A stretch of 64,000 bases of DNA, taken from NCBI GenBank assembly GCA_038087875.1, contig CM075985.1, positions 39,370,001 through 39,434,000 of the forward strand, in the 5' to 3' direction. The notes beneath the pieces were generated by a model, which saw only the letters and a program-made list of their open reading frames with translations, did no database searches and was not told the origin of the DNA. Shown here piece by piece: positions 13,196-57,400 of this stretch. The DNA is from Malacoraja senta. Taxonomy: Eukaryota. Made by a program: the position numbers and the translations under genes. Every line of letters starts with the position of its first letter. The stretch's first letter is position 1.

Positions 13196-13452
13196 CCATC
13201 ACCATCACCATCACTGTGTCCTCGTCACCATCACTGTGTCCTCGTCACCATCACTGTGTCCTCGTCACCATCACTGTGTCCTCGTCACCATCACTCTCAC
13301 CATCACCATCACTGTGTCCTCGTCACCATCACTGTGTCCCCATCACCATCAGTGTGTCCCCGTCACCATCACTGTGTCACCATCACTGTGTCTCCATCAC
13401 CATTACTGTGTCCCCATCACCATCACTGTGTCACCATCACTGTGTCCCTGTC

Positions 13453-14026
13453 AAAAAATGTATTAAATTATTAAAAAATAATATTACACTACAATAAAAC
13501 AAACCAGATCCCACCAACATAATACAATACAAACAAATATCCTTAATAAACCACTGTACAATTATCTTACATTCCTTGTCAAGGATGCATTCAACACCCT
13601 GTGGAACCCAGCGGTCCCAGAACTCCCTCAGGGTGCCCGTGGACAGGGCGTATTCCCTTTCTAACCGCACCCGGGCACGGACGTAACCCCGGAAAAGGGG
13701 CAGGCAGCCGGCTCGGGTAAAGCCCTCCATGGCCTGGCGCCTTGACTCGCGGATGGCCAGCTTGGCCAGGCTCAGGAGCAACACAACCAGGACATCTTCA
13801 GCCCTATCCTCTCCCCTACGCTAAGGGTGTCCAAAGATGAGGATGGTGGGTGAGAAGTGCAGCCAGAAGGCAAGGAGCAGCCCCTTTAGGTATTCAAACA
13901 GTGGCTGCAGCTTCATGCACTCCATGTACACTCCATCTACCAGCCCGCAAAAGTGGCAGGCGGCTGGCGAGTCTGTGAACCGCGAGAGAAACAGGTTGCA
14001 GGGAACACCTCGGTGCAATACCCTCC
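13453..14026 (-). mobile_element. Tx1-type LINE 3' fragment inserted in the satellite
   Basis: RVLHRGVPCNLFLSRFTDSPAACHFCG and LAKLAIRESRRQA..FRGYVRARVRLEREYA, the ORF2 C-terminus of Tx1 elements. Confidence 0.8.
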
Positions 14027-14602
14027 CCTGTGTCATCAACACTGTGTCCCCATCACCATCACTGTGTCCCCGTCACCATCACTGTGTCCCTATCACCATC
14101 ACTGTGTCCCCGTCACCATCACTGTGTCCCCGTCACCATCACTGTGTCCCCGTCACCATCACTGTGTCCCCGTCACCATCACTGTGTCACCATAACCATT
14201 ACAATGGCCCTGTCACCATGTCCCCATCACAAATACCATGTCTCCATCACTGTGTCTCCATCACAGAGTCCCCGTCATCATTATCCCCATCATTGTGTCC
14301 CAGTCACCAACACCATGTCCCCATCATGTATCACCATGTCACTATCATTATGTTTCTGTCACCATCACCGTGCCCCATCACCATCACCATCACCGTGTCC
14401 CCATCACCAATACCTTGACACTGTCACTGTGTCACCATCACTGTGTCCCCATCACCATCACTGTGTCACCATCACTGTGTCCCCGTCACCATCACTGTGT
14501 CAACATCACCATCACTGTGTCCCCATCACCATCACTGTGTTCCTATCACCATCACTGTGTCACCATCACTGTGTCCCCGTCACCATCACTGTGTCACCAT
14601 CA

Positions 14603-16041
14603 CATATCTGCCAACTAGTCCGATTTTATCGTATTTGTTCCGAATTTTAAGTTAAAAAAGTGTGAAAAATCGGAACAGTACGGTTTTGAAATGAGGAAAA
14701 AAAAGCGGCCAATCAACCGCTGTCTCGAAGGGGTTTGCGTCCAATCACCGACCAGCTTCAATAAAATTCTCGTCCAATTAGCCGCTTTCTCCAAGGGCAT
14801 TGTATCCAATCACATAATGCGCTGGTCATGCGGCGGCCAATCAGACGCTGACTCCGAGGGGCGTTGCGGCCAATCAACGACCAGTTTCCCTCACTGAAGC
14901 ACAAGATGGCTGCAGCCAACACTGTGTCTGCACACAATGCTGGGCAAAGAGACATTTCAGGTGTAGGTGTGTGAGTATGGAGGGAGGGAGGGAGAGGGAG
15001 AGGGAGAGGGAGAGAGGGGGGAGGGAGAGAAAGAGGGGGAGGGAGGGAGAGAAAGAGGGGGAGGGAGGGAGGGAGAAAGTAGGGTGAGTGAGGTAGAGGG
15101 AGAGAGAGCATGGGGGAGAGGGAGGGGGGAAGAGGAGAGAGAGAGGGGGAGGTGGGGAGAGGGAGGGGGAAGAGGAGAGAGAGAGGGGGAGGTAGGGAGA
15201 GAGGGGGGAGAGTGGAGAGAGAGAGAGGGAGGGCGAGAGAGATAGAGGGGGGAGAGTGATGGAGGGAGAGAATGGGGAGAGAGGGGGCGTGAGAGAGAGA
15301 GAGATGGAGAGAGGGAGGGGGAGAGATGGGGGAGAGAGAGGAGGCGAGGGGGAGATGTTGGTGTGAGAGGGGGAGAGAGGGATGGAGAGAGAGAGAGAGA
15401 GGGAGTGAGAGGGGGAGCGAGAGAGGGAGTGAGTGGGAGAGAAAGAGAGAGAGGGAGGGAGAGGGGGTAGGATGAGAGAGAGAGGGGGAATGGAGAGTGA
15501 GGTAGAGGGAGAGAGAGCATGTGAGAGGGGGAGGGAGAGGGAGGGAGGGGGGAAGAGGGGGGAAGAGGGGGGAGGGAGAGAGAGAGCGGGGGGGAGGAGA
15601 GAGGGGAGAGAGATGGAGGGAGAGAATGGGGAGAGGGAGGGGGAGAGAGGAAGGGAGAGGGGGGAGGGGGAGGGAGAGGGGGGGAGAGAGAAGGCGAGGG
15701 GGAGATGGGGGAGAGAGAGAGGGGGAGAGAGGAATTGGAGAGAGAGGGAGGGGGGTGAGAGAGAGAGAGGGAGAGAGATTCCTTCCTTCCATCCAGCCCC
15801 TTAACGTTTCCTCAGACCATGGGGAAATGGTGCTGCCAAATGACTTTCAATGATATACCTGGACAATTGCAAGAAAGCACCTATGACATATAATACACAA
15901 TAAACCTTATTACAAATACACAATAAACAAGTTATGCATTCTTGTACTCTTGTAGGTGTCTTGTATGTGTCTAGTACATGGGTATGACCGCACATAAAAA
16001 TTCAAAATAAGATTTTTCATTTTCAAATGTTGGCAGGTATG
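14603..16041. mobile_element. Non-autonomous DNA transposon, 13-bp TIRs, apparent 6-bp TSD CCATCA (hAT6/DNA-6-like, inferred)
   Basis: Left CATATCTGCCAAC (14603-14615) and right GTTGGCAGGTATG (16029-16041), one mismatch; CCATCA on both flanks. Contains a CCAAT cluster and an ~800-bp GA tract. Confidence 0.8.
14975..15780. repeat. Polypurine (GA-rich) low-complexity tract
   Basis: Almost only G/A on the + strand. Confidence 0.95.
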
Positions 16042-16770
16042 CCATCACCATCACTGTATCACCATCACCATCACCATCACTGTGTCCCCGTCACCATCAC
16101 TGTGCCACCATCACCATCACTGTGTCACCATCACTGTGTCCTTGTCACCATCACTGTGTCACCATCACTTTGTCGCCTTCACTGTGTCACCGTCACCATC
16201 ACTGTGTCACCATCACTGTGTCACCATCACTTTGTCGCCTTCACTGTGTCACCGTCACCATCACTGTGTCACCATCACCATCACTGTGTCACCATCACTG
16301 TCACCATCACCATCACTGTGTCACCGTCACCACCACTGTCACCATCACCATCACTGTGTCACCGTCACCATCACTGTGTCACCATCACTGTCACCATCAC
16401 CATCACTGTGTCCCCGTCACCATCACTGTGTCACCATCACTGTCACCATCACCATCACTGTGTCCCCGTCACCATCACTGTGTCCCCGTCACCATCACTG
16501 TGTCACCATCACTGTGTCCCCGTCACCATCACTGTGTCACCATCACCATCACTGTGTCACCGTCACCATCACTGTGTCACCATCACTGTGTCACCATCAC
16601 CATCACTGTGTCACCATCACTGTGTCACCATCACCATCACTGTGTCACCGTCACCATCACTGTGTCACCATCACTGTGTCACCGTCACCATCACTATCAC
16701 TGTCCCCGTCACCATCACTGTGTCACCATCACCATCACTGTGTCACCATCACTGTGTCCTCGTCACCATC

Positions 16771-18507
16771 AAGTCACATTTATTTATATAGCACATTTAA
16801 AAAACAACTCTCATTGGCCAAAGTGCTTTAAATTTGTATAAGAATAAGAATTGTATAAGAATTTGTATAAGAATGGTGGAGCAGCAAGATGGATTCAACA
16901 GTGGGTGAATGGGAGTTGCCAGAGAGTAATGGTGGATGGCTGTTTGTCAGGTTGGAGGCCGGTGACTAGTGGGGTGCCTCAGGGGTCTGTGTTGGGTCCA
17001 CTGTTGTTTGTCATGTACATCAATGATCTGGATAATGGTGTGGAAAATTGGATTAGTAAGTATGCAGATGATACTAAGATAGGTGGTGTTGTGGATAATG
17101 AAGTAGATTTTCAAAGTCTACAGAGAGATTTAGGCCATTTGGAAGAGTGGGCTGAAAGATGGCAGATAGAGTTTAATGCTGATAAATGTGAGGTGCTACA
17201 TCTCGGCAGGACAAATCAAAATAGGACGTACATGGTAAATGGTAGAGAATTGAGGAATGTAGTTGAACAAAGGGATCTAGGAATAACTGTGCATAGTTCC
17301 CTGAAGGTGGAATCTCATGTAGATAGGGTGGTAAAGAAAGCTTTTGGTGTGCTGGCCTTTATAAATCTGAGCATTGAATATAGAAGTTGGGATGTAATGT
17401 TAAAATTGTACAAGGCATTGGTGAGACCAATTCTGGAGTATGGAGTACAATTTTGGTCGCCTAATTATAGGAATGATGTCAACAAAATAGAGAGAGTACA
17501 GAGGAGATTTACTAGAATGTTGCCTGGGTTTCAGCAACTAAGTTACAGAGAAAGGTTGAACAAGTTAGGTCTTTATTCTTTGGAGCGCAGAAGGTTAAGG
17601 GGGGACTTGATAGAGGTCTTTAAAATGATGAGCGGGTTAGACAGAGTTGACGTGGATAAGCTTTTCCCATTGAGAGTAGGGAAGATTCAAAGAAGGGGAC
17701 ATGACTTGAGAATTAAGGGACAGAAGTTTAGGGGTAACATTAGGGGGAACTTCTTTACTCAGAGAGTGGTAGCTGTGTGGAATGGGCTTCCAGTGGAAGT
17801 GGTGGAGGCAGGTTCGATTTTATCCTTTAAAAATAGATTGGATGGGTATATGGATGGGAAAGGAATGGAGGGTTATGGTCTGAGTGCAGGTAGTTGGGAC
17901 TAGGGGGAAGAAAGAAGAAAGAAGGGGAAAAAAAAAAAAAGTGTTCGGCACTGACTTGAAGGGCCGAGATGGCCTGTTTCTGTGCTGTAATGGTTATATG
18001 GTTAATAGTATAACAAACAAACTACATACATATAGCCCTCGCTCAGAGGACGTCAAGAAAGGCTTGGGAGTACAGATGGGTTTTTAGTCTTGACTTAAAG
18101 GAGTCGATGGAGGGGGGCAGTTCTGATGGGAAGAGGGATGCTGTTCTACAGTCTAGGAGCTGCAACCGCAAAGGCGCGGTCGCCCCTGAGCTTATGCTTA
18201 GTTGGAGGAAGTTCTGGGCCATCCAACACTTTATATCCTCGAGGCAGCGGGTAAGGTTAAGCAGATTTGATTGGTTTTTGGGCTTCAGGGGGAGATGGAG
18301 TTGTGTATCGTCTGCGTAGCAATGGAAGGAAATGCCGTGCCTTTCAATGACTTGGCCTAAGGGGAGCGTATACAGGGAGAAGAGAATGGGGCCAAGGATG
18401 GAACCTTGTGGAACCCCACAGCAGAGACTAGCTGGGGAGGAGAAAGAGTTGCCTATGTTAGTCGAGAAACTCCTACCTTTGAGGTAGGAGATGAACCAGC
18501 TCAGGGC
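16771..18507 (-). mobile_element. L2 LINE 3' fragment, split by a CR1 insertion
   Basis: Minus strand ALSWFISYL..CGVPQGSILGPILFSLYTLPLG..FHCYADDTQL (18300-18507); 3' end ...gtgctatataaataaatgtgacttga at ~16770. Confidence 0.8.
16865..18010 (+). mobile_element. CR1 LINE 3' portion (RT C-terminal half open)
   Basis: ORF 16851-17903: [38 protein letters not shown]; 3' tail gcctgtttctgtgctgtaatggttatatgg. Confidence 0.95.
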
Positions 18508-20480
18508 GGTTTTAATGTTTCACGTGTTCACAATTTAATTAATCCAACTTTATGGACTAAAACAAATAATAACATTGGGAATTAAAACACATTTCATTGC
18601 ATTCCGTTATCAAACATAGTTAATGTTCGCTCTGAAGACATTTCCAGCACAATAGGGTCAGGGAGGGGGGGGGGGTGTGAATCAGTGTGGGGTGGATAGA
18701 TGGCGGGGGGGCGAGAAGGCAATTGGTGTGGAATGGATGGATTGAGGGAGGTGAATTAGTACGTGTTGGTTAGAGTATGTAAAATTGTGAGGGGAGAGCA
18801 TGGGGGATGTCAGTGGTGTTGAATGGGGGGATCAGTATGGGATGGATGGGGGGGGGGTCAGTACAGGATGAATGGGTGGCTCAGTACAGGATGGATGGGG
18901 GGGGGGGTCAGCGCAGGATGAATGGGTGGGATCAGTACAGGATGAATGGGGAGCTGTCAGCACTGTGGATCGGAGGGTCTGTGCAGGATGAATGGAGGAT
19001 CACTGCAGGATGAATGAGGGGATCAGTACAGGATGAATGGGTGGATCAGTACAGGATGAATGGGGAGGATCAGTACAGGATGAATGGGGCTCACTACAGA
19101 ATGAATGGGGGTAGACAATAGTGCAGGAGAAACTCAGCGGGTGAGGCAGCATCTATGGAGCGAAGGAAATAGGCAACGTTTTGGGTCGAGACCCTTCTTC
19201 AGACTGTTTCCCCCATTCTTCTTGAATGGGGGGATCAGTACAGGATGGATGGGGGGGTTCAGTGCAGGATGAATGGGGCAGGGGGATCAGTACAGGATTA
19301 ATGGGGGGGCAGTACAGGATTAATGGGGGGGTCAGTACAGTGTGGATCGGAGGGTCTGTGCAGGATGAATGGGGGATCACTACACAATGAATGAGGGGAT
19401 CAGTTCAGGATGAATGGGTGGTTCAGTACAGGATGAATGGGGGATTCAGTAAATGATGAATGGGAGATCAGTAAAAGATGAATGGGTAGATCACTACAGG
19501 ATGGATGGGGGGGGGGGGGGTGGTGCAAAATGAATTGGGGGACCAGTGTAGGATGGATGGGGGGGGGGGGGTGGCAGGAGAATCAATGTGAGGTGGATAG
19601 GGTGATCAGCACAGATGGGAGTGGGGGGGTAGATGGGGAGGGGAGCACAGGGGATGTCAGTGAGGACTGAATAGAGGCGGGAATGGGGATCAGTGCGGGA
19701 TGGAGAGGAGGGGACTCAGGATAAGGGGGGAGGGTGGAGGGGGCATACAGAGAGAGAGAGGGGGGTGAGGGGCAGAGGAGGTGGGGAGGAAGGAAGGTCA
19801 GCGCTCCTCGGACAACATCGCCCCGCTGCCTTGGCCGTCCCTGTCCACCGCCAAGTGCCGCCACCAAAGGGGGAGGCGGTTGGGATCTCCTCGCCACCGC
19901 CTCCCCTCCTCCGCCAGCCAACAGCAAGGTGCGGGGCAGAGCGGTGCAGCTCAAAGATCCTACAGCTATAGGATCTTTGGTGCAGCTGCTTCTGACGGCG
20001 GAAGGAGGCCTCACCCTCCCTCCCTCCTCCCGGCCTCACCCTCCCTCCCTCCCTCCCTCCCTCCCTCCCTCCTCCCGGCCTCACCCTCCCTCCCTCCTCC
20101 CGGCCTCGGCGTGCGAGAGGGATTGTTTTGAAAGCGCCGTTGGCGGAGTGGCAGGCAGCGGCCGCTATCAGGGCGGGCGGTGGGTGGGAGGAGACGTTGG
20201 AGCCGCTGTCGCGGCCGCTGCAACCGCTGTGCTGGGCCCGTCATTCGCTCCGACCTTTCGTCACCACGCACCTAATATCATTGCCCCGCAATACAGCCGT
20301 CGCTGACACGAAACGTCACGTTCCTTTTCTCCAGAGATGCTGCCTGACCCGCCGAGTTCCTCCAGTTTTTTGTATCTATCTTCGGCAGTGCCAAGTCGGG
20401 CAAAATGACTCGCCGTTTAGGTTGCCCGGCTCACTTTGGGTGGTCAGTGGCACCCGGGCAACCATTAATTTTGAGCCCTG
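18506..20480. mobile_element. Left-truncated copy of the CAGGGCTC-TIR composite transposon
   Basis: Collinear with 46430-48118, including the GATCAGTACAGGATGAATGGG minisatellite, Penelope pLTR pieces and right TIR GAGCCCTG (20473-20480). Confidence 0.85.
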
Positions 20481-20785
20481 CCCTCACTGTGTCACCATCA
20501 CTGTGTCACCATCACCATCACTGTGTCACCGTCACCATCACTGTGTCACCATCACTGTGTCACCGTCACCATCACTGTGTCACCATCACCATCACTGTGT
20601 CACCGTCACCATCACTGTGTCACCATCACTGTGTCCCCATCACCATCACTGTGTCACCGTCACCATCACTGTGTCACCATCACCGTCACCGTGTCCCCGT
20701 CACCATCACTGTGTCACCATCACTGTGTCCCCGTCACCATCACTGTGTCACCATCACTGTGTCACCATCACTGTGTCCCCGTCAC

Positions 20786-20950
20786 ATACATAGATACATA
20801 GAAAGTAGGCCATTCGGCCCTTCGAGCCTGCACCGCCATTCAATATGATCATGGCTGATCATCCAACTCAGTATCCCGTACCTGCCTTCTCTCCATACCC
20901 CCTGATCCCTTTAGCCACAAGGGCCACATCTAACTCCCTCTTAAATATAG
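20786..20950 (-). mobile_element. Short 5'-truncated CR1 tail inserted in the satellite
   Basis: atacatagatacatagaaagtaggcc...ctcttaaatatagc sits between gtcac and atcactg of the satellite. Confidence 0.85.
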
Positions 20951-21469
20951 CATCACTGTGCCCGTCACCATCACTGTGTCACCGTCACCATCACTGTGTC
21001 ACCATCACTGTGTCCCCGTCACCATCACTGTGTCCCCGTCACCATCACTGTGTCACCGTCACCATCACTGTGACCCCGTCACCATCACTGTGTCCCCGTC
21101 ACCATCACTGTCACCATCACCATCACTGTGTCACCGTCACCATTACTGTGTCCCCGTCACCATCACTGTGTCACCATCACTGTGTCCCCATCACCATCAC
21201 TGTGTCCCCGTCACCATCACTGTGTCACCATCACCATCACTGTGTCCCCGTCACCATCACTGTGTTCCCGTCACCATCACTGTGTCACCATCACCATCAC
21301 TGTGTCACCGTCACCATTACTGTGTCACCATCACTGTGTCACCATCACTGTGTCACCGTCACCATCACTCTGTCCCCGTCACCATCACTGTGTCACCGTC
21401 ACCATTACTGTGTCCCCGTCACCATCACTGTGTCCCCGTCACCATCACTGTGTCACCATCACCATCCCC

Positions 21470-24305: not shown

Positions 24306-24444
24306 ACAGATTCCTGATTAGTACAGGTATCAGGGGTTTTGGGGGGAAGGCAGGAGAATAGATCAGCCACAGTTGAATGGCAGAGTAGACTTGATGGGCC
24401 AAAAGGCCTAATTCTGCTCCTATTACCTGTGAACCTCTGACCCT

Positions 24445-24860
24445 AGACTGTGGTCCATCCCCACAGAGCCTTGGCATTGTCGACACCAAGATTCAATGTA
24501 TCCCTCAGCACTTTCTGCAGTCTGGGTTAGCTCCGTTTGCAATATTCCCTGATATCTCACTCTGCTGGAGTGACCAAACATTTTCAGGCAGAGCAAAAAG
24601 CATCTTTCACTGAGTTGATGGTTTTCCAGACCCTATCTGTGTTTTTTGCTGTCCTGCAGCCCAGATGGAAGGGTTGGATTATCCTTCATACATCCAACTG
24701 TGAAAGTATAACCAAGCCTTACGGCTGTGGCTCACGATAATCCCTCTGAGAACCTTTGAAAAAAAGTCCCATCTTGCTCCACAGAGTGGCCCCAGAGACT
24801 TGCGGAACAAGGACAATGTCTGCATGGGAGCAGAAGCCGTTTAATTGCTACTACCGGGTA
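24445..24860 (-). mobile_element. Degenerate Tx1-type 3' fragment
   Basis: Homologous by eye to 25780-25920 (cagagccttggc..caatgtatccctcagcac). Confidence 0.5.
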
Positions 24861-25624: not shown

Positions 25625-25925
25625 GGACTATACATGTAAAATACCAATTTTACTCCACAACCTTGTTACTCATGTGGCCCACTGGCGTGAAATCCCTTCC
25701 TTTATTTTGGGGGGGGTCTCCACCACACTCTGCCCTCCCCCAATGTGCAGCAGCGGAAGGACCCCAGACTGCCCTCCCGCACAGAGCCTTGGCGTTAGTT
25801 GCGCCAAGCTTCAATGCGTCCCTCAGCACGTACTCCTGCAATCTGGAGCGGGCCAGTCGGCAACATTCCCTGATGGACAGCTCGCTCTGCTGGGAGACCA
25901 ACAAAAGTTCGGGCATCTTTCACCT
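25625..25925 (-). mobile_element. Tx1-type LINE 3' fragment abutting the promoter array
   Basis: LLVSQQSELSIRECCRLARSRLQEYVLRDALKLGATNAKALCG; 3' tail ...gtaaaattggtatttt. Confidence 0.75.
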
Positions 25926-25929
25926 GGCA

Positions 25930-27326
25930 GTGATTGGCTCCACTGTTCCCGGCAGTGATTGGTGGAGCGTTGCTGCGTGTGATTGGTGGAGCGTTGCTGT
26001 GTGTGATTGGTGGAGTTTTGCTGCGTGTGATTGGTGTAGTGTTGCTGCTGTGTGATTGGTGTAGGGTTGCTGCCTGTGATTGGTGTAGAGTTGCTGCGTG
26101 TGATTGGTGTAGAGTTGCTGCCTGTGATTGGTGTAGAGCTGCTGCTGTGTGATTGGTGTAGGGTTGCTGCCTGTGATTGGTGTAGAGTTGCTGCCTATGA
26201 TTGGTGGGGAGTTGCTGCTGTGTGATTGGTGGGGAGTTGCTGCCTGTGATTGGTGTAGAGTTGCTGCTGTGTGATTGGTGGGGAGTTGCTGCCTGTGATT
26301 GGTGTAGAGTTGCTGCCTGTGATTGGTGTAGCGTTGCTTCCTGTGTGATTGGTGTAGCGTTGCTGCCTGTGATTGGTGGGGAGTTGCTTCCTGTGATTGG
26401 TGTAGAGTTGCTGCCTGTGATTGGTGTAGGGTTGCTGCTGTGTGATTGGTGGGGAGTTGCTGCCTGTGATTGGTGTAGAGTTGCTGCTCTGTGATTGGTG
26501 TAGAGTTGCTGCCTGTGAATGGTGTAGATTTGCTGCTGTGTGATTGGTGTAGGGTTGCTGCCTGTGATTGGTGTAGAGTTGCTGCTGTGTGATTGGTGGG
26601 GAGTTGCTGCCTGTGATTGGTGGGGAGTTGCTGCCTGTGATTGGTGTAGAGTTGCTGCCTGTGATTGGTGGGAAGTTGCTTCCTGTGATTGGTGTAGAGT
26701 TGCTGCCTGTGATTGGTGTAGCGTTGCTGCCTGTGTGATTGGTGTAGCGTTGCTGCCTGTGATTGGTGGGGAGTTGCTTCCTGTGATTGGTGTAGTGATG
26801 CTGCCTGTGATTGGTGTAGGGTTGCTGCTGTGTGATTGGTGTAGCGTTGCTGCCTGTGATTGGTGTAGCGTTGCTTCCTGTGATTGGTGTAGTGTTGCTT
26901 CCTGTGATTGGTGTAGTGTTGCTGCCTGTGATTGGTGTAGTGTTGCTGCCTGTGATTGGTGTAGCGTTGCTTCCTGTGATTGGTGTAGTGTTGCTGCCTG
27001 TGATTGGGATAGGGTTGCTGCTGTGTGATTGGTGTAGCGTTGCTTCCTGTGATTGGTGTAGTGTTGCTGCCTGTGATTGGTGTAGGGTTGCTGCTGTGTG
27101 ATTGGTGTAGCGTTGCTGCCTGTGATTGGTGTAGGGTTGCTGCTGTGTGATTGGTGTAGCGTTGCTTCCTGTGATTGGTGTAGCGTTGCTGCCTGTGATT
27201 GGTGTAGGGTTGCTGCTGTGTGATTGGTGTAGCGTTGCTTCCTGTGATTGGTGTAGCGTTGCTGCCTGTGATTGGTGTAGGGTTGCTGCTGTGTGATTGC
27301 TGTAGCGTTGCTTCCTGTGATTGGTG
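25930..27326 (+). repeat. Promoter-proximal minisatellite, ~58 units of 24-26 bp, consensus TGTAGNGTTGCTGCCTGTGATTGG
   Basis: Hand count of 56 intact TGATTGG plus two variants (TGAATGG, TGATTGC). The last ATTGG is at 27320-27324, 16 nt before the TATA-like element. Confidence 0.97.
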
Positions 27327-27340
27327 TGCTCTGCCAGCCC

Positions 27341-27348
27341 TATTTAAA
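27341..27348 (+). promoter_or_regulatory. TATA-like box (TATTTAAA) of the class II beta gene
   Basis: Lies between the Y-box array and the ATG at 27397, at the start of a CpG-rich segment covering exon 1. Confidence 0.65.
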
Positions 27349-27396
27349 CTGCTGCAGACGCGGTTCCGCAGTTTCGCGGGAGCCCAGTGAGTGGTG

Positions 27397-27493
27397 ATGA
27401 GTGACTGCGCCGTCCAGCTCCGTGCCCTGTGGCTCAGGCTCCCTCTCCTCATCTGTGCCGCGCTGCTCCATGGACAGAAGGATGCCGGAGTCG
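27397..27493 (+). CDS. mhc2dab: MHC class II beta exon 1 (signal peptide)
   Basis: ATG at 27397, hydrophobic leader [16 protein letters not shown], strong phase-1 donor G|GTGAGT at 27494 compatible with exon 2, TATA-like element 49 nt upstream and Y-box array above it. Lower confidence because it lies 23 kb from exon 2. Confidence 0.82.
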
Positions 27494-30400
27494 GTGAGTA
27501 CCGGGGCCGGATCAGGGAAGGCCACTCGGCCCGTCGTCTCTGTGACAGATCCCCACAGTACATTCCTATCCCAGCGCCGTGCCGGGTTACGGCGCCCTCC
27601 TGCAGCCCCGACTGACCCCGCTTCCACCTGGGGCTCGGTGAGCCGGTTCTATTGTGAGGTGTGGATGGGCTGAGAGTGGAGAAAGTTCGGTAAAAGATAA
27701 GAGGGAACCCGTCCCACCATGAAATTGGGTTATGGCTGATCTACAGTGCCCTCCATAATGTTTGGGACAAAGACCCATCATTGATTTATTTGCATCTGTA
27801 CTACACAATTTGAGATTTGTAATAGAAAAAAACCACATGTGGTTAAATGCACATTGTCAGATTTTAATAAAGGGTATTTTTACACATTTTGGTTTCACCA
27901 TGTAGAAATTACAGCAGTGTTTATACATAGTCCCCTATTTCAGGACACCATAATGTTTGGTACACACCAATGTCATGTAAATGAAAGTAGATATGTTTAG
28001 TTTGTGTTGCATATACTTTGCATGCAATGACTGCTTGAAGTCTGCGATTCATGGACATCACCAGTTGCTGCATCACACAGGCAGCATCTCTGGTGATGCT
28101 CTGCCGGGCTTGTATTACAGCCACCTTTAGCTTCTGCTTGTTTTGGGGGCTAGTCCCCTTCAGTTTTCCCTTCAGCATATAAAAGGCATGCTCAATTGGA
28201 TTCAGATCAGGTGATTGACTTGGCTACTCAAGAATTGACCATTTTTTAGCTTTGAAAAACTCCTTTGTTGCTTTGGCAGTATGTTTAGGATCGTTGTCTT
28301 TCTGTAGAATGAACTGCCGGCTAATGAGTTTTGAGGCATTTGTTTGAACTTGAGCAGATAGATTGTGTCTATACACTTCAGAATTCATTATGCTACTACC
28401 ATCAGCAGTTGTATCATCAATGAAGATAAGTGAGCCAGTACCTTTAGCAGCTATACATGCCCAGGCCATAACACCCCCACCACTGTTTCACAGATGAGGT
28501 GGTATGCTGTGGATCTTGGGCAGTTACTTCTCTCCTCCATACTTTGCTCTTGCCATCACTCTGATACATTTTTTAGGAAGGAACTGCAGATGCTGGAAAA
28601 ATCAAAAGTAGACTAAAAGTGCTGGAGAAACTCAGTGGGTGAGGCAGCATCTATGGAGAAAAGGAGTTCATTGCCAGTGAGGACCAGCGGAAATTGGAGG
28701 AACAGTACCTCATATTTTTCTTAGGTAGGTTACACCCCAGCGGTATGAACATTGACCTCTAATTTCAGGTAGTCCTTGCTTCCTTCCTCTTTCCCCTCCC
28801 CCTTCCCAGCCCTCCCACATAACCTACTGTCTCTGACTCTTCCTTTCTTTTTCCCGGCCCCCCCACCCCGACATCAGTGTGAAGAAGGGTCTCGAGCCGA
28901 AATGTCACCTACTCCTTTTCTCCATAGATATTGCCTCTAAGTTTCTCTGAGTTTCTCCAGCATTTTTTGTCTAATTTCACTCGGATACAAGTTAATCTTC
29001 ATCTAATCTGTCCACAAGACCTTTTTCCAAAACTGGTTGTTCTTTTAAGTACTTCTTGGCAAATTTTTACTTGGCCATCCTATTTTTGCAGCTAACCAGT
29101 CAGTGGTTTGCATCTTGCAGTGTAGGCTCAGTATTTCTGTTCATGAAGTCTTCTGCGGACAGTGGTCACTGACAAATCCACACCTGACTCCTGAAGTGTT
29201 TCTGATTTGTTGGACAGGTGTTTGGGGTTTTTGCTTTATTATAGAGAGAATTCTTATGTCATCAGCTGTGGAGGTGTTCCTTGGCCTGCCAGTCCCTTTG
29301 CAATTAGTAAGCTCACCAGTACTCTCTTCTTCTTGATGATGTTCCAAACAGTTGATTTTGGTAAACCTACGGTTTGGCTGATGTCTCCAACAGTTTTATT
29401 CTTGTTTCTCAGTCTCATAATGGCTTCTTTGACTTTAATTGGCACAACTTTGGTCCTCGTGTTGATAAACAGCAATCAAAGTTTCCAAAGCTGATGGAAA
29501 GACTGGAGGAAAGACTAGGTGCTGTGAGCTCTCTTATACCTGCATTTAAACACACCTGAGCAATTACAAACACCCATGAAGACCTGTCCCAAACATTATG
29601 GTTCCCTGAAATGGGGGGACTTTGTATAAACACAGCTGTGAAACCAAATGTTTCACAGGTGAAATAAAAATGTCCGTTATTAAAATCTGACAACGTGCAC
29701 TTTAACCGTATGTGATTTTTTTTTCTATTAGAAATCTCAAATTGTGTAGTACAGAGGCAAATAAATAAATGAGTCTTTGTCCCAAACATTAGGGCACTGT
29801 ATCCCTACGTTATTTAATTTTCCTGTCATTTCCTTGAGGGCCTGTCCCACTTGGGCATCATTTGCGCATCATTTACGTGACATCATTTACGCATCATGGT
29901 GCACGTTACGAGTGCATGGTGCGTGGTGATGTAGGCAGTGACGCACAGTCGCGAGCGGCGCCACAGGATTTTGGGATTCACAAAATCTTCGTGCGCCACC
30001 TGCGTGACGCCCAAGTGGGACAGGCCCTTTAGATCCCCGATCAGTCCAGCAACGTATTGCAGTATCCTGAATGAACTCATCTCTGGGTGAAGGCATTTTC
30101 TGTCATCTCTGTCTCGTGTAAATTTATTCTGAGACGGACCTCTCATTTCTAGATTCCATGTTTTGCATCCAGTCTGTTAAACCCAGTTGTGATTGTATAA
30201 ATCCGAGCGTCTTCTCTCTAGACATGTTAGATTAATGCCAGTTTCCTATTTTCTTGCCGTTTGATAAGTGTGGTTACATTTGTAACTCTCTGATCCTGGG
30301 GATCAATTCCAGAATTGATGTTAATTGGAACGTCCATTATGTCTGCAGACAATTATTTCAGAACTCTGATGGATAAATGGCCTCTTGGTTTCAAAGTCAA

Positions 30401-45400: not shown

Positions 45401-48400
45401 TTTTCGAGGATGTAACTAGTAGAGTGGATAAGGGAGAACCAGTGGATGTGTTATATCTGGTCTTTCAGAAGGCTTTTGACAAGGTCCCACATAAGAGATT
45501 AATATACAAACTTAAAGCACACGGTATTGGGGGTTCAGTATTGATGTGGGTAGAGAACTGGCTAGCAGACAGGAAGCAAAGTGTAGGAGTAAACGGGTCC
45601 TTTTCAGAATGGCAGGCAGTGACTAGTGGGGTACCGCAAGGCTCAGTTCTGGGACCCCAGCTATTTACAATATATATTAATGATTTGGACGAGGGAATTG
45701 AATGCAACATCTCCAAGTTTACGGATGACACGAAGCTGGGGGGCAGTGTTAGCTGTGAGGAGGGTGCTAGGAGGCTGCAAGATGACTTGGATAGGCTGGG
45801 TGAGTGGGCAAATGCATGGCAGATGCAGTATAATGTGGAGAAATGTGAGGTTATCCACTTTGGTGGCAAAAACAGGAAAGTAGACTATTACCTGACAGGG
45901 CTCTCACTTAACTTTTTTTCCCTGTTGCCAGCCGGGCAACCTTGGCAGCTTTTTAGGTTGCCAAATGACAGTTTAGGTGGTCATTTAAGACGGCTTGCAT
46001 GACGCGTGCGATAATGTACTTGGACGAAGTGCGTAGTTACCAGTCGGAATTGTACTCAATGAAGCATTCACATATTCTGCTTCAAATAAAGTCACAAACT
46101 AAACATATTCACCAATCAAGACATGATATATCCCACAATGACATGCAGCAAAATTATAAGACAGTATCTCAACTCTTTTTACACATTGCAATTAATGCAA
46201 TTTCTATTAGTTCTTTCCACCTCCAAACAAAAATGTGGTTGGATTATTCAGCGTATGGCCAACCTGTGTCAATAAATCTTGGACCATGGTAACGTATATG
46301 CGTACGTATAGTTGTGAATGTTGCTCATTAAATAACTACAGTACTGATACTCCATATTAAGAGCATTGATTTGCCGTTAAATTGAATTCTGTAATAACGT
46401 GTCATCGGCAGCTGTGACAATCGAACACTGCGGTTTTAATGTTTCACGTGTTCACAATTTAATTAATCCATCTTTATGGATTAAAACAAATAATAACATT
46501 GGCAATTAAAACACATTTGATTGCATTCCATTATCAAACATAGTCAATGTTCGCTCTGAAGACATTTCCAGCACAATAGGGTCAGGGAGGGGTGTGTGTG
46601 TGAATCAGTGCGGGGTGGATAGATGGTGGGTGGGGGGGGGGGAGGGTTAGAAGGCAGTCGGTGCAGAATGGATGGATTGAGGCAGGTGAATTAGTACGTG
46701 TTGGTTGGAGTAGGTAAAATTGTGAGGGAGAACCAGGGATGTCAGTGGTGTTGAATGGGGGGGTTCAGTACGGGATGGATCGGGGTAGACAAAAGTGCTG
46801 GAGAAACTCAGCGGGTGAGGCAGCATCTATGGAGCGAAGGAAATAGGCAACGTTTCGGGTGGAGACCCTTCTTCAGACTGTTCCCCCCCATTCTTCTTGA
46901 ATGGGAGGGTCGGTACAGGATGGATGGGGGGGGGGGAGATCAGTGCAGGATGAATGGGGGGGTCAGTACAGTGGATCGGAGGGTCTGTGCAGGATGAATG
47001 GGAGATCACTACAGGATGAAGGGGGGAAGGTGCAGGGTAAATGGAGGGTGGGTCAGTACGGGATGAATGCGTGGATTAGTACAGGATGGATGGGGGATCA
47101 GTACAGGATGGATGGAGAAGTGCAGGATGGATGGGAAAGGGGTAAGTACAGGGTGAATTGGGGGACCAGTGTAGGATGGATGGGGGGGGGGGGTGGCAGG
47201 AGAATCAATGCGAGGTGGATAGGGTGATCAGCGCAGGATGAATAGATGGGGGGGGGGGGGTAGATGTGGAGGGGAGCACAGGGGATGTCAGTGAGGACTG
47301 AATAGAGGCGGGAATGGGGATCAGTGCGGGATGGAGTGGAGGGGTCACAGGATAAGGGGGTGGAGGGGGGGTACGAGAGAGAGGGGGGGGAGAAAGGAAG
47401 GTCAGCGCTCCTCGGACAACATCACCCCGCTGCCTTGGCCGCTGGGAACTCCTCGCCACCGCCTCCCTCATCCGCCAGCCAACAGCAAGGTGCGGGGCCG
47501 AGCGGTGCAGCTCAGAGATCCTATAGCTATAAGATCTTTGGTGCAGCTGCTTCAGACGAGTCGGAGCGAATGACGGGCCCTGCACAGCGGCAGCGACAGC
47601 AGCTCCATCTCCTCCTCCCGCCCGCCCTGATAAGGGCCTCGGCTTGCAAACCCTTAAAAGCGATAACCGCTTTCAAAACAAACCCTCCTGCATGCCGAGG
47701 CCTCCCCCTCCCTCCTGGGCTCGGAGTGCGGGAGGGTTTGTTTTGAAAGCGGTTATCGCCGTTAGCGGATTTACAAGCCGAGGCCCTTATCAGGGCGGGC
47801 GGGGGGAGGAGAAGGAGATGGAGCCGCTGTCGCGGCCGCTGCTGCCGCTGTTCGGAGCCCATCATTCGCTCCGACCCTTCCTCACCCTCGCATCTAGTAT
47901 CTTTTCCCCGCACGACAGCCGCCGCCGACACGAAACGTCACGTTCCTTTTCTCCAGAGATGCTGCCTGACCCGTGGAGTTACTCCAGTTTTTTGTGTCTA
48001 TCTTCGGTACAAACCAGTATCTGGTTGGCAAGCCGGGCAAAATGACTTGGTGTTTAGGTTGCACGGCGGCGCTTTGAGTGGTCAGTGGCACCCGGGCAAC
48101 CGCTAGTTTTGAGCCCTGCCTGAATGGTGGCCGTTTAGGAAAAGGGGAGATGCAACGAGACCTGGGTGTCATGGTACACCAGTCATTGAAAGTAGGCATG
48201 CAGGTGCAGCAGGCAGTGAAGAAAGCGAATGGTATGTTAGCTTTCATAGCAAAAGGATTTGAGTATAAGAGCAGGGAGGTTCTACTGCAGTTGTACAGGG
48301 TCTTGGTGAGACCACACCTGGAGTATTGCATACAGTTTGGTCTCCTAATCTGAGGAAGGACATTTTTGCCATAGAGGGAGTACAGAGAAGGTTCACCAGA

Positions 48401-51400
48401 CTGATTCCTGGGATTCAGGACTTTCATATGAAGAAAGACTGGATAGACTTGGCTTATACTCGCTAGAATTTAGAAGATTGAGGGGGGATCTTATAGAAAC
48501 TTACAAAATTCTTAAGGGTTTGGACAGGCTAGATGCAGGAAGATTGTTCCCGATGTTGGGGAAGTCCAGAACAAGGGGTCACAGTTTAAGGATAAAGGGG
48601 AAATCTTTTAGGACTGAGATGAGAAAAACATTTTTCACACAGAGTGGTGAATCTCTGGAATTCTCTGCCACAGAATGTAGTTGAGGCCAGTTCATTGGTT
48701 ATATTTAAGAGGGAGTTAGATGTGGCCCTTGTGGCTAAAGGGATCAGGGGGTATGGAGAGAAGGCAGGTACAGGATACTGAGTTGGATGATCAGCCATGA
48801 TCATATTGAATGGCGGTGCAGGCTCGAAGGGCCGAATGGCCTACTTTGCACCTATTGTCTATGTTTCTATGTTTCAATGTAATTTTTCGTAGATCACAGG
48901 ACAATGGTGATGCAAAAATTGTAGCGCTATGGTGCACCGTTTTGCACAAATATAGGTACAAATATAGGAACAAACAAGATGAAAGATTTAGTAATATATA
49001 ATAATATATATAGAGTAAGGGAAAAACGTTGTCAAATCGAACAAAATTTGATACAGCATGCTAATAGTGAGTCAGGCGGGCCTAAAATTGTTGCACTGTC
49101 ATGTACCATTTTGGCATAAAGGGCATATACAGACAAATATGATGTGTGTGTGTATCTACCTAACCAAGTGTGGCCTGTTGGGTCCCGTTCCCCCAACGCA
49201 ATATTGCACCACTCGCCCATAGCCCGCAACTGCGCAGGCGTAGCAGACGTTTTTAAAGTTTAAAATGGCAATAACTTGTAAAATATAAGATCAATGTGAA
49301 TGCATCTCACTCTCCCTCTTCAGTCCCCTATTCCCCTCCTCCCTCTCCCCACCTTCCGTCAACCCTCCTCTGCTTCCTCCCCTCATCCCCTCCTCTCTCT
49401 TCCCACTCCCCTCCTCCATTACCTTGCCATCCCTCTTCCTACTCCTATCTTCCTCCATTCCCCAACATCACTCCCCCTCCACTTCACCCTCTTATTTCCC
49501 CTCCCTCCCTCTTCTTTCCCTTCTCCTCCTCCCCTCTCCCACTCCCTCCCTCACCTCTCCCTCCCTCTTCTTTCCCCTCTCCTCCTCCCCTTCAGAAGAA
49601 GGGTCTTGAGCCGAAACGTCACCCATTCCTTCTCTCCGGAGATGCTGCCTGTCCTGCTGAGTTACTCCAGCATTTTGTGTCTACCTTTGATTTAAACCAG
49701 CATCTGCAGTTCTTTCCTACATATCTTGATGCTCACATGTCCTATTTGCCCTTGCAACAGAACCGGAGTCAAATTTGCCACCACCTAGCATTGAAGTTAA
49801 ATTATTTTTCTGTTGTAACTTTCACTCTGCATTGAATGGTTTGGCTCTGCCAGACATTTATGAGCTCCCAAGGCAGAGCACCAATGGCGTCTGGTTCTCC
49901 ATGGTTCAACCAATGATTCTTCCTGGATATTAATATGAAACTCTAATTCTACATGTTTTCTGGATCTACTTCATTGCATAGTAATTAATTCTTGCATTCA
50001 ACTGGACTGCACAGCCTGTTACTGGGTCTCCAAAGATGCCCTGTCAAGCAAGCACTGCACCCAGCCTGTGGATTGATCCCTGCTCCATGCGTATTGCTGT
50101 CACTGTGCACTTTTGTTCATCGTACCCTGGACCCAGTCACCACCTCTACACACCTCACTTCCCTATCATGGTCAAATCTTGGCCTTGTTTTAATTCTGTT
50201 CTCCAGCCATCTTTGTTCATCCGCACTCATCAAATAACCTCATTAAGCTTCTTGGCTTCTGTTAGATTAAAAGTAATATTTCTGATGCTTTTATTTCTCT
50301 CAGACGTTGACCTTCATGTTATTCTTCTTCCAAAAAGCCAAGTTACATTATTACAAACATTGTGAACTAGCTCTGCTCTGCACCTGTATTGGATGGACTC
50401 CCCTAAACTGGGTCCACACCCCCCACCACTACCCCAGTGGGCAGTGGACCATGGCTGCGGCACTGGATCCCAATAAGGGTGGATGGGTGGGGCAAAGGAT
50501 GCAGGCATAGAATGGACTGTCTATTGTGGTAATAAATGTCCTCTTTTACCCCCACCACCCTCCCCAACAGGAGCTCACTCCGGTAATTTCATGTACGGCT
50601 GTAAGTTTAACAGCAGTGCTCCTGGGAACTGGACCTACGTCTACCTGTACGTGTATGACCACGAGCTGATTGCCTACTTCGATTATGACCAGAAGAGGTA
50701 TGTGGCGGCGAAGGACTGGATGCACGGGAACGTGGACAGATGGAACAATGATGGTTCAGCGGAAGCTCAGTACCAGGCCGGGATCAGAGTCTGTGAGAAC
50801 AACATTCCCATCTATGAGAGTCAGGTCCTGAACCGGAGAGGTGAGAGGATTGGGGTGGGAGGTTGAGGAAGAGCTGGCAAGTTTCTATTTGGTAGGGATC
50901 AGATGAAACCAACCCTTCCCATTGGTCTGGAGAGGAGGACCTGTACATCCAGCCCCCATCTACTTCAGCTGGATAAACTGCAGCCATGATTGCCAGCTAA
51001 CATTGACCCATCCATCCTTCATTTTCTCCACCACGAAACCACCATGGCAGAGTCTGTGTGCTGTGCTCCACACTGTCCACCCAACGGACAGCTGGTGGTA
51101 AGCCTGATATCCCAGGTGTGGTGGCCCAGACCGAGCACATATCTGGGTCAGTGGGAAGCTCCACTCAAATGGTCATACGGGACGAAACTGGACACTTCAG
51201 CCCATCATGTCCATGCCAACCCATCTATTGTATTTCCCTGCACTTGATCATGCCCATCTCCACCATGGAGATCCATGTGCTGGTCCAAATTCCTGAACGT
51301 TGAGTTTCAGCCTCATATCACACCCTCGGGTGTAGTCCCAGATTCCAGTATCCCTGTGAAAGAAGTTCTTTTTGGGATCTTTCCAGATTTGATTCCCTCG

Positions 51401-54400: not shown

Positions 54401-57400
54401 ATGTTGCCTTAGTATTTGTCTCAATGCTGAGCCTTCTGGCAGGACACTTGGTCACTGTTCCTGCTACAAAGTCAAGCAACTGTTTGCCATATTTTAGGTT
54501 GTCTTTGTGGGGCCATTGAGCTTGGAGTAAACAAGTTCTGGGAAGCAGGTGTGCATTGGATGGTTGTCTCCTTCATACTGAGCAACACCTGGGCAAGTGG
54601 ATAAATACCATGTGGTGGGGGCAAAGCATAAGGCAGAGGATTCTGCCCCTGAAGTCATTAGTCAGCAGGAAGCTCCACCCTTCCTCGAATGGTCTTCACT
54701 GGAACGTTCGTTCGTTCTGGAAGATTGGGATATTTGGAAGCTGACTGACACTGCTGGGGTTTAGGGGCAACAACTAATTGGCTGTGGTTGCCCCCTTCTG
54801 CTTTAACCCTCTGCTTTATAGGGTTTAACTTTCTGCTTTCTCCTCCAGTTGAACCTGAGATCACAATCCGACCCAAAGTCTCCTCCCGCGCGGGGCAGTC
54901 GGCCCTGCTCACCTGTCACGTCACTGGTTTCTACCCTCCTGAGATTGAAGTCACATGGCTGAAGAACGGCGGCCCAGTCCCCAGCGGTGCCATCAACACA
55001 GTGCTGATGTCAGACGGTGACTGGACCTATCAAGTGCAGGAACTCCTGGAGTACCACCCGGTGTCCGGGGATACCTACACCTGTCGTGTGGAACACAGCA
55101 GCCTGGCAGAGCCCAAGGCCATGGACTGGGGTAAGGTGCACAGCAGCCACAACCCTGCTTCCCCCAGCCTTGTCTCAGTAATGTTCTCATTCCAGACACT
55201 GATTCACTTCAGTAAAAGGTGCAGCTTTTAGTATTGTTTCAGATACTGTTGGGGAGGGGGGCTGGTGGTGACCATTTGGGAGAAAGCAACATAGGTTAGT
55301 GATTCCAAGGCTGGCTCTGAGGCACAATGGGGAAGATAAAGTCAGACGAGGCTATGTTGACGGGAGATTCTATGTAGGAAAGCTGTCAGGTGGTCTAGTC
55401 TAAAAGGTGAAAATGGGATCAAATGATTTGAAATCCAGGTGCAGCAAAGCATGAGGTAGACCTGTGGTTGGGTATTGTTTGAAGGAGAACCATGGGTCAG
55501 TTAGGTGAAACTTTAGCTGAGGCATAGAACATGGGACCAATAGAACTGTACAAGTTGTACATGCCAATGTCTCCATGTCCCCTTCTGCCTTTCTAATTCT
55601 GTTTGAAGTCATCCCCTGCACTCCACTCCCTCATTGATCCACGAGCCATGACCAGCTTCTCTGCCACATGTTGTATCTCTACTCTGTGGGCCAACAGTCA
55701 TTTGCTGGCATTTCATTCCTGTGATATTCTGATTTCTCACCAACACTGTTCTGTTCACTTGCTGCATTCTCAGTCTGCCCCATGTGTAGTTGGTTGGATA
55801 ATTTGTACATGGTGTTACTCTCACTATGTGTCAATCATGAGAGGAATAGATCGGGTAGACGCACATAGTCTCTTGCCCCGAGTAGGGGAATCGAGGATCA
55901 GAGGACACAGGTTTAAGGTGAAGGGGAAAAAATGTAATAGGAATCTGCAGGGTAACGTTTTCACAGGAAGGGTGGTGGGTGTATGGAATAAACAGCCAAA
56001 TGAGGTAGTTGAGGCTGGGACTATCCCAACGTTTAAGAAACGGTTAGACAGGTACATGGATGTGACAGGTTTGGAGTGGTACAGTATGTGCCAAACGCAG
56101 GCAGGTGGGGCTAGTGTAGCTGGAGCATGTTGGGCAGTGTGGGCAAGTTGGGCCGAAGGGCCGGTTTCCACGCTGTAGGACTCCCCTGAAGCTACTTTTG
56201 GAAACTGATGTGACTCTTCTACAGCTACAGCACCCGGCCATCAGCCTGCAGACTCTGTTAATTCAGTTACCAGTCAGTAGGGTGTCTGGTTCTCTAGCAG
56301 CATCTCCAGCACAGCCTATTGTGTGCATACTAGGTGGTGCGGGATGATGTTTCCCCAGATACAGATACTCCCTCAGACTGTTAATTTAATCCCTTCCCCC
56401 TTCCTATGCTGAGTGATTATTCAACTGATACAGATGACGGGCTGTTCCATATGTCGGCTCCCACTCTGTGTGCGTGTGTGTGTTCCCTCGGGGCTGTTCT
56501 AATTCTTGACTGTTCCACCCCACAGAGGTGCAGAGCTCAACTGAGTCTGGGACAACCAAGATCATCGTGGGAGTGCTGAGCTTTGTGTTTGGGCTGCTCA
56601 TCCTGCTGGCTGGAGTTATAATGAAGCTGAGGAATGCTAAAGGTGAGCTAGTGTGTGGGGGAGTCTGTCCCAGGCCTCCCGCCCAGGGCTCCACTAATGG
56701 ACACGTGTGATCCTGCTACTTGGCTGGAGGGTCTGGGCCCAACCCAAGGATCAACGACCCATTCCTCCCCTCCAAATGTGGACCAATACCCCAACACAGC
56801 CTGGAACAAGTTAACACCAGGCAAAATGGGGCAATAGGTAGGCCTGTTGCATCCTGGCCTAAGGTCCTGTCAGCTCAAACATTGCTTTAATTGTAAATGA
56901 AATTAAAATATCACAATGCCAAAACACAATCCCACAAATCTTCAGGGAATCTCACAAATCTGATTTTTTTTAAGACGTGACCAAAAATGGCAATGAGGGC
57001 AGAGCTGTGGATGTTGTGTACATGGATTTCAGTAAGTCATTCGACAAGGTTCCCCATGGTAGGCTGCTCTGGAAGGTTAGATCTCATGGGATCCAAGGAG
57101 AGATAGCTGAATAGACAGCAAATTGGCTTCATGAAGGAAGCAGAGGGTGACCGTGGAAGGTTGCTTCTCGGACTGGAGGCCTGTGACTAGTGGTGTGCCT
57201 CAGGGTTCAGTGCTGGGCCCGTCACAATTTGTCATCTACATCAATGATTTAGATGAGAACATACAGGGCAAGATTAGCAAGTTTGCTGATGATACAAAAG
57301 TGGGTGGTTTTGCAGATAGTGAAGATGGTTGTGAAACATTGCAGCAGGACCTTGATCGATTGGTCAGATGGGCTGAGAATTGGTTGATGGCATTTAATAG

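Follow-up and report, generated by a model that had tools for sequence, protein, structure and literature searches.

A 58-unit Y-box array in the proximal promoter of a skate MHC class II beta gene

Results

In the window, i.e., the whole 64-kb stretch of skate DNA analysed here, 58 tandem units of 24-26 bp stand head-to-tail at 25931-27324 of the assembled sequence, in front of the TATA-like box and first exon of an MHC class II beta gene. It is likely that this array is a lineage-specific tandem expansion of a Y-box repeat that is native to the proximal promoters of class II beta genes in elasmobranchs, with slippage or unequal exchange as the most likely origin. The array is an extreme expansion of an old promoter design and not a multiplied version of the whole mammalian S-X-Y module. 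New here are the phased runs of four to eight boxes at the homologous place in rays and sharks, as well as the position of the skate array between ancestral boxes. In the open-access literature searched, neither elasmobranch class II promoters nor an array of this kind were found described, and the two principal papers on class II genes and the organisation of the MHC in cartilaginous fish make no mention of promoters.

The promoter region contains the following features, in window coordinates.

25650-25926, no strand assigned: fragment of a high-copy interspersed repeat adjoining the 5' end of the array, from word depth and diverged copies
25931-25955, + strand: proto-unit TGATTGGCTCCACTGTTCCCGGCAG, the ancestral penultimate Y box plus spacer, from a gapless alignment to Hypanus
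25956-27317, + strand: 56 expanded units, each 24-26 bp long and containing one Y box (inverted CCAAT); consensus TGATTGGTGTAGAGTTGCTGCCTG
27318-27340, + strand: last (ancestral) Y box TGATTGG plus 16-nt spacer, aligning to TGATTGGTTTGTTCTGCCGG..TATTTAAA of the rays
27341-27348, + strand: TATA-like box TATTTAAA, kept in relatives
27365-27380, + strand: predicted transcription start zone, around 27371, by homology from a relative's transcripts

The gene behind the array

An earlier reading of this DNA, made from its letters (the sequence-only reading), had described the array as an MHC class II beta promoter. That it is the proximal promoter of such a gene is well supported by leader homology, a five-exon gene and a splice junction in a sister species. 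The coding exons are as follows.

27397-27493, + strand: coding part of exon 1, leader peptide, donor at 27494; from the leader of Rhinoraja longicauda P0001 and sister-species RNA
50571-50840, + strand: beta1 exon, AG/GT borders, phase 1, two cysteines 64 residues apart
54849-55130, + strand: beta2 exon (Ig C1-set), Pfam C1-set E=3.4e-24
56526-56642, + strand: connecting peptide and transmembrane exon
60150-60179, + strand: cytoplasmic exon

The gene has a leader, a beta1 exon, a C1-set beta2 exon, transmembrane and cytoplasmic exons and phase-1 introns. All five exons have AG/GT borders, and the spliced product is 82.6% identical to the annotated Rhinoraja longicauda class II beta. The beta1 exon scores 20.2 bits against Pfam MHC_II_beta (PF00969), slightly below the cut-off of 20.9. 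The beta2 exon is 89% identical to Rhinoraja class II beta, and in the Protein Data Bank its top single-domain hits are class II beta chains. The leader, starting at ATG 27397, matches annotated class II beta leaders of skate, rays and sharks, closely so for Rhinoraja longicauda P0001. As it is shared with annotated class II beta proteins, 27397-27493 must be the true first exon, and intron 1 is 23 kb long.

In a small RNA run of a sister species (X7), a contig of depth 318 lies on 27409-27494 and then goes over into AGCTCACTCC..., the first bases of the beta1 exon. This spliced contig departs from the window at 27493/27494, and the beta1 exon is found 23 kb further downstream. Exon 1 was seen in X7 only; the sister-species RNA-labelled runs X11, X12 and X14 gave nothing. 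These data show that the class II beta gene is intact and that its ortholog is expressed in a sister species. In Rhinoraja, the class II beta gene model extends over 161 kb.

No same-species RNA run containing the exons was found; for the start site, transcript contigs from a related skate or ray served as a proxy. One of them (L006) starts at TTTAGCTCC, 30 nt after the first T of TATAAA, and a second (L008) has a template-switch-oligo junction at the same place, also 30 nt past that T. A third contig (L005) has such a junction within the TATA box, while a fourth (L004), in which the box reads TATAAAG, extends back as far as the last Y box. Together, these ends and extents indicate a main TATA-directed start and minor upstream starts in the relative. 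Because some of the relative's transcripts have their 5' ends at the TATA box or before it, an array of this kind could be partly transcribed instead of lying wholly upstream. By homology the start in the window should lie near 27371, and the start range of 27350-27390 predicted by the sequence-only reading agrees with the TATA-to-start distance in the relative's transcripts.

Anatomy of the array

Splitting on the TGATTGG anchor divides the array into one proto-unit, 56 full units and one last partial unit; the full units are 24 bp (n=40), 25 bp (n=14) or 26 bp (n=2) long. Tandem Repeats Finder places the array at 25955-27327 with period 24, 56.5 copies, 88% matches and a score of 1926, and a period of 73 scores about equally (1933). 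With tandem units within 10-100 bp and a higher-order structure, the array has the make-up of a minisatellite and is a candidate VNTR. The unit pattern has 55 matches in the window, all of them within the array, and none in 100 shuffles.

TGATTGG is exact in 56 of the 58 boxes, the two broken ones reading TGAATGG and TGATTGC, and GTTGCT is found in 52 of the 56 full units. After TGTAG, 22 units have A, 16 have C, 10 have G and 8 have T. On the 3' side, the last ATTGG ends at 27324 and is followed by 16 nt (27325-27340), the TATA-like box and, at 27397, the ATG. The re-parsing confirms what had been read from the letters, namely 24-26-bp units ending 16 nt before TATTTAAA, TGATTGG in 56 units, GTTGCT in all but about four and all four nucleotides after TGTAG.

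On the reverse strand the units read ACACCAATCAC, and the boxes share one orientation at 24-26 bp from each other. The last ATTGG is at -77 relative to the ATG, about 50 bp before the predicted start. The NF-Y consensus has a purine two positions before CCAAT; in the array units this base is C, which speaks against the NF-Y reading. The Y-box call rests on the pentamer, the flanks and the conservation across species. The boxes precede the start site and read as inverted CCAAT on the coding strand, and both strand and position are those seen in rays and sharks.

Turnover inside the array

Unit positions 1-9 (TGATTGGTG) and 16-19 (TGCT) are nearly invariant across the array, while positions 10, 11, 13, 20 and 22-25 carry high-frequency variants that define the unit types. 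Rare changes confined to single units number roughly 4 in the 9 core positions and 8 in the 15 others, and two of them break the core. Because these rare changes are spread evenly over the unit, the conservation of the core inside the array shows no selection, and selection on the cores as read from within-array variation was rejected. Recent homogenisation and copying account for the uniform cores, a caveat that the sequence-only reading had raised and that is upheld here.

Perfect three-unit repeats of 73 bp (25+24+24) are found at 27097-27300, the TATA-proximal end of the array, and at the far, TATA-distal end the units are unique and more diverged. The perfect copies close to the TATA box indicate that the array was changing until recently. 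Taken together with the diverged far end they suggest ongoing unequal exchange and, as a probable consequence, length polymorphism. Tandem Repeats Finder also detects abundant other minisatellites with 14-34-bp units in the 64-kb window, so short-unit expansion is common here and could be neutral.

It is possible, if on balance doubtful, that the array is such a neutral minisatellite, in which only the last one or two Y boxes work and the other ~55 units are harmless slippage with no effect on expression, maybe in ordinary or silent chromatin. The even spread of single-unit changes with two broken cores, the recent turnover seen in the perfect 73-bp copies and the many neighbouring arrays all fit this explanation, as does the fact that four to six boxes suffice in rays. 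However, the cores are intact in 56 of 58 boxes, and a further argument against it comes from the relatives discussed below.

On the + strand, the window contains no second phased ATTGG run. The - strand has a cluster of six boxes at 14709-14880; these are spaced differently from those of the array and have no gene behind them.

Phased Y boxes in rays and sharks

The comparison covers four genomic loci, from two rays (Mobula and Hypanus) and two sharks (Scyliorhinus and Rhincodon). Positions of ATTGG are given relative to the ATG.

Mobula hypostoma (L001): -228, -175, -150, -125, -100, -75; TATA-like box TATTTAAA
Hypanus sabinus (L002): -147, -122, -97, -72; TATA-like box TATTTAAA
Scyliorhinus canicula (L003): -250, -225, -201, -150, -126, -101, -76; TATA-like box TGTTTAAAG
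Rhincodon typus (L007): -272, -176, -145, -120, -68; TATA-like box TATATAAAG

Both rays and both sharks have four to eight ATTGG boxes on the same strand at the homologous position, mostly 24-25 bp apart, with a looser phasing in Rhincodon (spacings 96, 31, 25 and 52). The last box lies about 68-77 bp before the ATG in all five species. Every box at the four relatives' promoters is on the coding strand, with no CCAAT in the opposite orientation. ATTGG has a background frequency of about 0.3 per 200 bp and strand. Within the 26-62 kb loci, these promoters are the only places with chains of at least four boxes at 24-26 bp, and even a three-box chain at this spacing appeared in only 2 of 300 simulated 60-kb sequences. 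One three-CCAAT chain at 24-26 bp was found by chance within a LINE reading frame. No class II alpha genes are present in the fetched loci of the relatives.

In the sharks, the spacers between the boxes are unrelated to one another, and it follows that boxes and phase are conserved and are not recent copies. The case for several functional NF-Y sites with this spacing rests mainly on this observation. As multiple phased boxes have been kept over roughly the whole elasmobranch tree, more than one NF-Y site appears to matter, contrary to what a neutral array with one or two working boxes would predict. The unit length also equals the packing distance of NF-Y, which speaks against neutrality as well. 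All of these points are compatible with a role for the first few copies alone. The earlier identification of TGATTGG as a Y box is credible, given that same-strand ATTGG at ~25-bp spacing is kept in rays and sharks despite diverged spacers.

Origin between two ancestral boxes

The proto-unit plus the next box form a gapless alignment with the interval between the penultimate and the last Y box of Hypanus, with 28 of 36 bases identical. At the other end, the last box, its spacer and the TATA box of the window align to both rays. From these two alignments it can be concluded that the 56 extra units sit between the ancestral penultimate and last boxes, and we prefer a tandem expansion at this place as the explanation of the array.

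Upstream, the array borders on an interspersed repeat. In same-species read sets, word depth climbs to 4.3e5 at 25650-25904, the single-copy flank being at 38. A small deletion at 25904 sets other copies of the repeat apart from the window, and diverged copies are found in the window at 8696-8895 (-) and 24439-24577 (+). The consensus of the repeat extends to TCTTTCAC at ~25926, 4 nt before the first Y box. The similarity of the diverged copies runs to this point, so the repeat abuts the first box.

This junction raises the alternative that the array was brought in by, or is part of, the adjoining repeat, as the tail satellite of a mobile element, or that it is an assembly artefact. The very high-copy repeat does stop 4 nt before the first Y box, and its other copies go on with a loosely similar GTGATGGTCTTCCAG. 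Nevertheless, we find this explanation hardly credible, as the proto-unit fits the rays' promoter (score 32) far better than it fits the repeat copies (10-13), and array words are at single-copy depth. A derivation of the first Y box from the repeat was rejected on these alignment scores. Further, both array borders are matched without differences by contigs from two public same-species read sets, one of which may be the sample behind the assembly. The contigs cover 25853-26071 at the 5' border and 27270-27671 and 27301-27700 at the 3' border; they are short and leave the interior of the array unspanned. Contigs of the sister species also cover part of the array, at the single-copy depth of that species.

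Array word depth is at most 57, set against 38 for the single-copy flank and about 4e5 for the neighbouring repeat. The sequence-only reading had named a minisatellite scattered genome-wide as an observation that would refute it; at single-copy depth, the array is not a genome-wide satellite. A few further copies may exist at other class II genes. Upstream of the tandem expansion, no distal ancestral promoter (further Y boxes, or the X1-X2 box of the sharks) was found in the window.

Only the Y box is amplified

Class II promoters contain a single S-X1-X2-Y module, in which RFX, CREB and NF-Y recruit CIITA and the X-Y spacing is fixed. The X1 box is an RFX site of about 14 bp, CCYAGCAACNGATG, upstream of the Y box and in the same orientation. 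Beside it lies X2, a CRE-like TGACG/TGCGTCA, and the distance from X2 to Y is about 18-20 bp.

The sharks have this module, upstream of their run of Y boxes. In Scyliorhinus, X1-X2-Y is found in the canonical orientation at -651 (GGCAACAGATGACG, 19 bp, CTGATTGG); more Y boxes follow on its 3' side, with a palindromic insertion with duplicated flanks in between. Rhincodon has two X1-X2 copies, at -544 and -413, and the X2-to-Y spacing in the sharks' true module is 18-19 bp.

A search for the sharks' X1-X2 motif with up to two mismatches gave nothing above chance in the array and the 27 kb upstream of it in the window, and no match above chance in Hypanus. X1-X2 was not found within 10 kb upstream of the rays' genes; Mobula has three two-mismatch matches, more than in shuffles, all of them within or downstream of the gene. 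For X2 in the form TGACG[TC][CA], the 3 kb before the ATG gave no match, in-array hits set aside, and TGACG is absent from the listed array unit types.

The sequence-only reading had proposed that the S-X-Y module itself was amplified, with GTTGCT as an X1-like half-site. Each unit would then be a compact Y + X1 module, and RFX and NF-Y would recruit CIITA repeatedly to a multi-enhanceosome whose length sets expression. AGCAAC, the core of X1, is indeed present in 52 of 56 units, and the TGCT part is nearly invariant. However, the match is limited to this 6-mer, which lies on the opposite strand downstream of ATTGG, inverted relative to the Y box and without X2. GTTGCT starts 7-8 bp after ATTGG, instead of a spacing of ~30, and the homologous units of the rays have GTTCTGCC or TTTTCCTCTGCC in its place. 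The true module in the sharks is located elsewhere in the promoter and in the canonical orientation. In addition, with a period of 24 bp GTTGCT sits at +12 to +17 of the neighbouring CCAAT. The contacts of NF-Y span -7 to +17 of CCAAT, which sets a minimum of 24 bp between two NF-Y sites (PMC4982600). GTTGCT therefore lies among the bases contacted by NF-Y; RFX would find no space on a fully loaded array, and joint occupancy is unlikely. Taken together, we consider an amplified Y + X1 module very improbable, and the cautions that came with the proposal (a half-site that is inverted and nearer to Y, and no X2) hold in the motif search.

The GTTGCTGCC of the unit is the counterpart of GTTCTGCC after the last box in the rays and of TGTGCTCTGCC in the window's own last unit. 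The occurrence of these two at the matching place makes the X1-like 6-mer a derived feature of the amplified spacer. GTTGCT would then be a by-product of the amplified spacer and not an RFX site.

A putative NF-Y platform

We suggest that an ancestral, functional repeat of close-packed NF-Y sites underwent a runaway expansion between the penultimate and the last box, so that each unit of the array would be an NF-Y site. The array has the sequence properties of a multi-site NF-Y element, with compatible CCAAT flanks, one orientation, 24-26-bp spacing and a proximal site less than 100 bp from the start. Since the period of 24-25 bp is the minimum centre-to-centre distance of side-by-side NF-Y trimers, the array could load a contiguous run of NF-Y. 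Such a run could hold nucleosomes off ~1.4 kb of DNA upstream of the start and keep it open. For the TATA-directed start, the usual Y-box role would probably fall to the last few boxes, and most of the distal copies are probably redundant.

A bolder version can be formulated, in which the ~58 close-packed NF-Y sites would be the main upstream control of the classical class II beta gene of the skate and would replace the distal promoter. The still-changing length would set chromatin opening and expression per allele, and the dependence on RFX and CIITA may be lower than in other jawed vertebrates. We regard this as distinctly unlikely.

Comparison with known systems

The textbook class II promoter is a rigid single-copy S-X-Y module, conserved among jawed vertebrates. 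The skate array belongs to the same gene family as the mammalian S-X1-X2-Y promoters and shares with them a Y box that is located tens of bp before the start and reads as inverted CCAAT. In the two sharks the likeness extends to X1-X2-19 bp-Y almost letter for letter (GGCAACAGATGACG ... CTGATTGG). The difference from the mammalian promoter is that only the Y box has been multiplied, to 4-8 copies in rays and sharks and to 58 in the skate. Also, a TATA box is present, and X1-X2 is missing from the 27 kb upstream in the window and from 10 kb in the rays.

In the U3 region of human ERV9/LTR12, NF-Y is bound to 5-17 tandem repeats (review, PMC11853044), and CCAAT pairs 24 bp apart have been read as side-by-side NF-Y trimers (PMC4982600, PMC11853044). 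Both there and in the skate a variable number of tandem units (~41 bp in LTR12) carry a CCAAT each, and for LTR12 the binding of NF-Y has been demonstrated by experiment. However, the LTR12 repeats are retroviral, occur at thousands of loci and also contain GATA and MZF1 sites, whereas the skate array is a single-copy element of a host promoter with one recognisable motif and far more copies. Cell-cycle promoters with multiple CCAAT boxes (TOP2A/TOP2B, CCNB1/2) have several NF-Y sites of the same orientation before the start, acting additively (PMC4982600). They have 2-5 boxes, typically 31-33 bp apart, in contrast to 58 boxes at 24-25 bp here. In the dolphin DQA promoter the T-box is duplicated in tandem, an example from cetacean class II genes (PMC6155461). 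This is also a regulatory motif of a class II promoter that was tandemly duplicated in one lineage, but it amounts to one extra copy of 11-22 bp, compared with the 1.4-kb array in the skate.

In summary, sharks keep X1-X2-Y, and in elasmobranchs the class II beta promoters additionally have a phased series of Y boxes, packed as tightly as NF-Y permits; in one skate lineage this series has grown to 58 copies beside the TATA box. With promoters of 4, 6, 7 and 58 sites, nature offers a series in which one could determine the number of neighbouring NF-Y trimers that a promoter is able to exploit, and the ability of NF-Y to keep a long DNA segment open by itself. It could also reveal whether MHC haplotypes differ in expression partly through the length of such an array. 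Finally, for genome annotation, the phased ATTGG run is a practical guide to the leader exon of class II beta genes in elasmobranchs, which lies far upstream.

Promoter elements around the class II beta start site

Both catshark and whale shark retain, in their class II beta promoters, an X1-X2-(18-19 bp)-Y module close to the mammalian one, GGCAACAGATGACG...CTGATTGG. The catshark promoter is split by a palindromic insertion flanked by duplicated ACATTAACCTTGTAA, while that of the whale shark carries two X1-X2 copies. A further conserved element lies near the start site, a short way 3' of the TATA box, and reads TTCCG(C/T)AGTTTC in batoids and TTTCAGTTTC in catshark; we take it to resemble an interferon-response/IRF motif.

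Shark X1-X2-Y promoter features:
L003 (catshark) 9351-9392 and 9497-9738
L007 (whale shark) 2457-2492 and 2587-2600

Conserved post-TATA element:
window 27364-27375
L001 (Mobula hypostoma) ~9972-9986
L002 (Hypanus sabinus) ~9978-9992
L003 (catshark) ~9963-9975

The 5' ends of related-species transcripts fall in some cases 30 nt past the TATA box and in others at or upstream of it, the most upstream ones extending to the last Y box. Library adapters (Nextera end, template-switch oligo) remain on these skate or ray contigs, at L004 1-60, L005 1-40 and L008 1-30.

Repeats in and around the Y-box array

Adjoining the Y-box array, window 25650-25926 holds an interspersed repeat of very high copy number (word depth ~4e5 vs 38) that stops 4 nt short of the first Y box. 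Compared with the genomic consensus, this copy has a small deletion at ~25904.

Further copies of the interspersed repeat:
8696-8895, minus strand
24439-24577, plus strand

Besides the Y-box array, two minisatellite families are repeatedly present, one of TCACCATCACTGTG-type with periods of 14, 20 and 34 bp and the other, TGAATGGGGGGATCAGTACAGGA, with a period of 23 bp. The region as a whole is minisatellite-prone.

Two recurring minisatellite families:
window 13199-14603, 16042-16771 and 20491-21466
also 18820-19512 and 46933-47188

Minisatellites also flank a second group of ATTGG boxes, which is followed by a T-run. No gene is evident downstream of it on the minus strand, and the cluster could be a mobile-element promoter.

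Minus-strand cluster:
window 14709-14880, minus strand, six ATTGG boxes in GATTGGCCGC-type units, spacing ~35-40 bp

Gene structure and domain annotation

In the class II beta gene, the first intron (window 27494-50570, 23 kb) is packed with reverse-transcriptase reading frames belonging to LINE-like elements. The model of the Rhinoraja ortholog spans 161 kb. Within it, on the other strand, lies a second class II beta model, a partial one, and the long model may therefore join exons from different copies.

Elasmobranch class II beta1 domains score at or under the Pfam MHC_II_beta cut-off: the window domain (50573-50839) reaches 20.2 against 20.9, and, with E values up to 1 allowed, P0001 (the Rhinoraja longicauda class II beta protein) and P0011 give no match. 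Annotation by domain therefore shows these chains as Ig C1-set proteins only.
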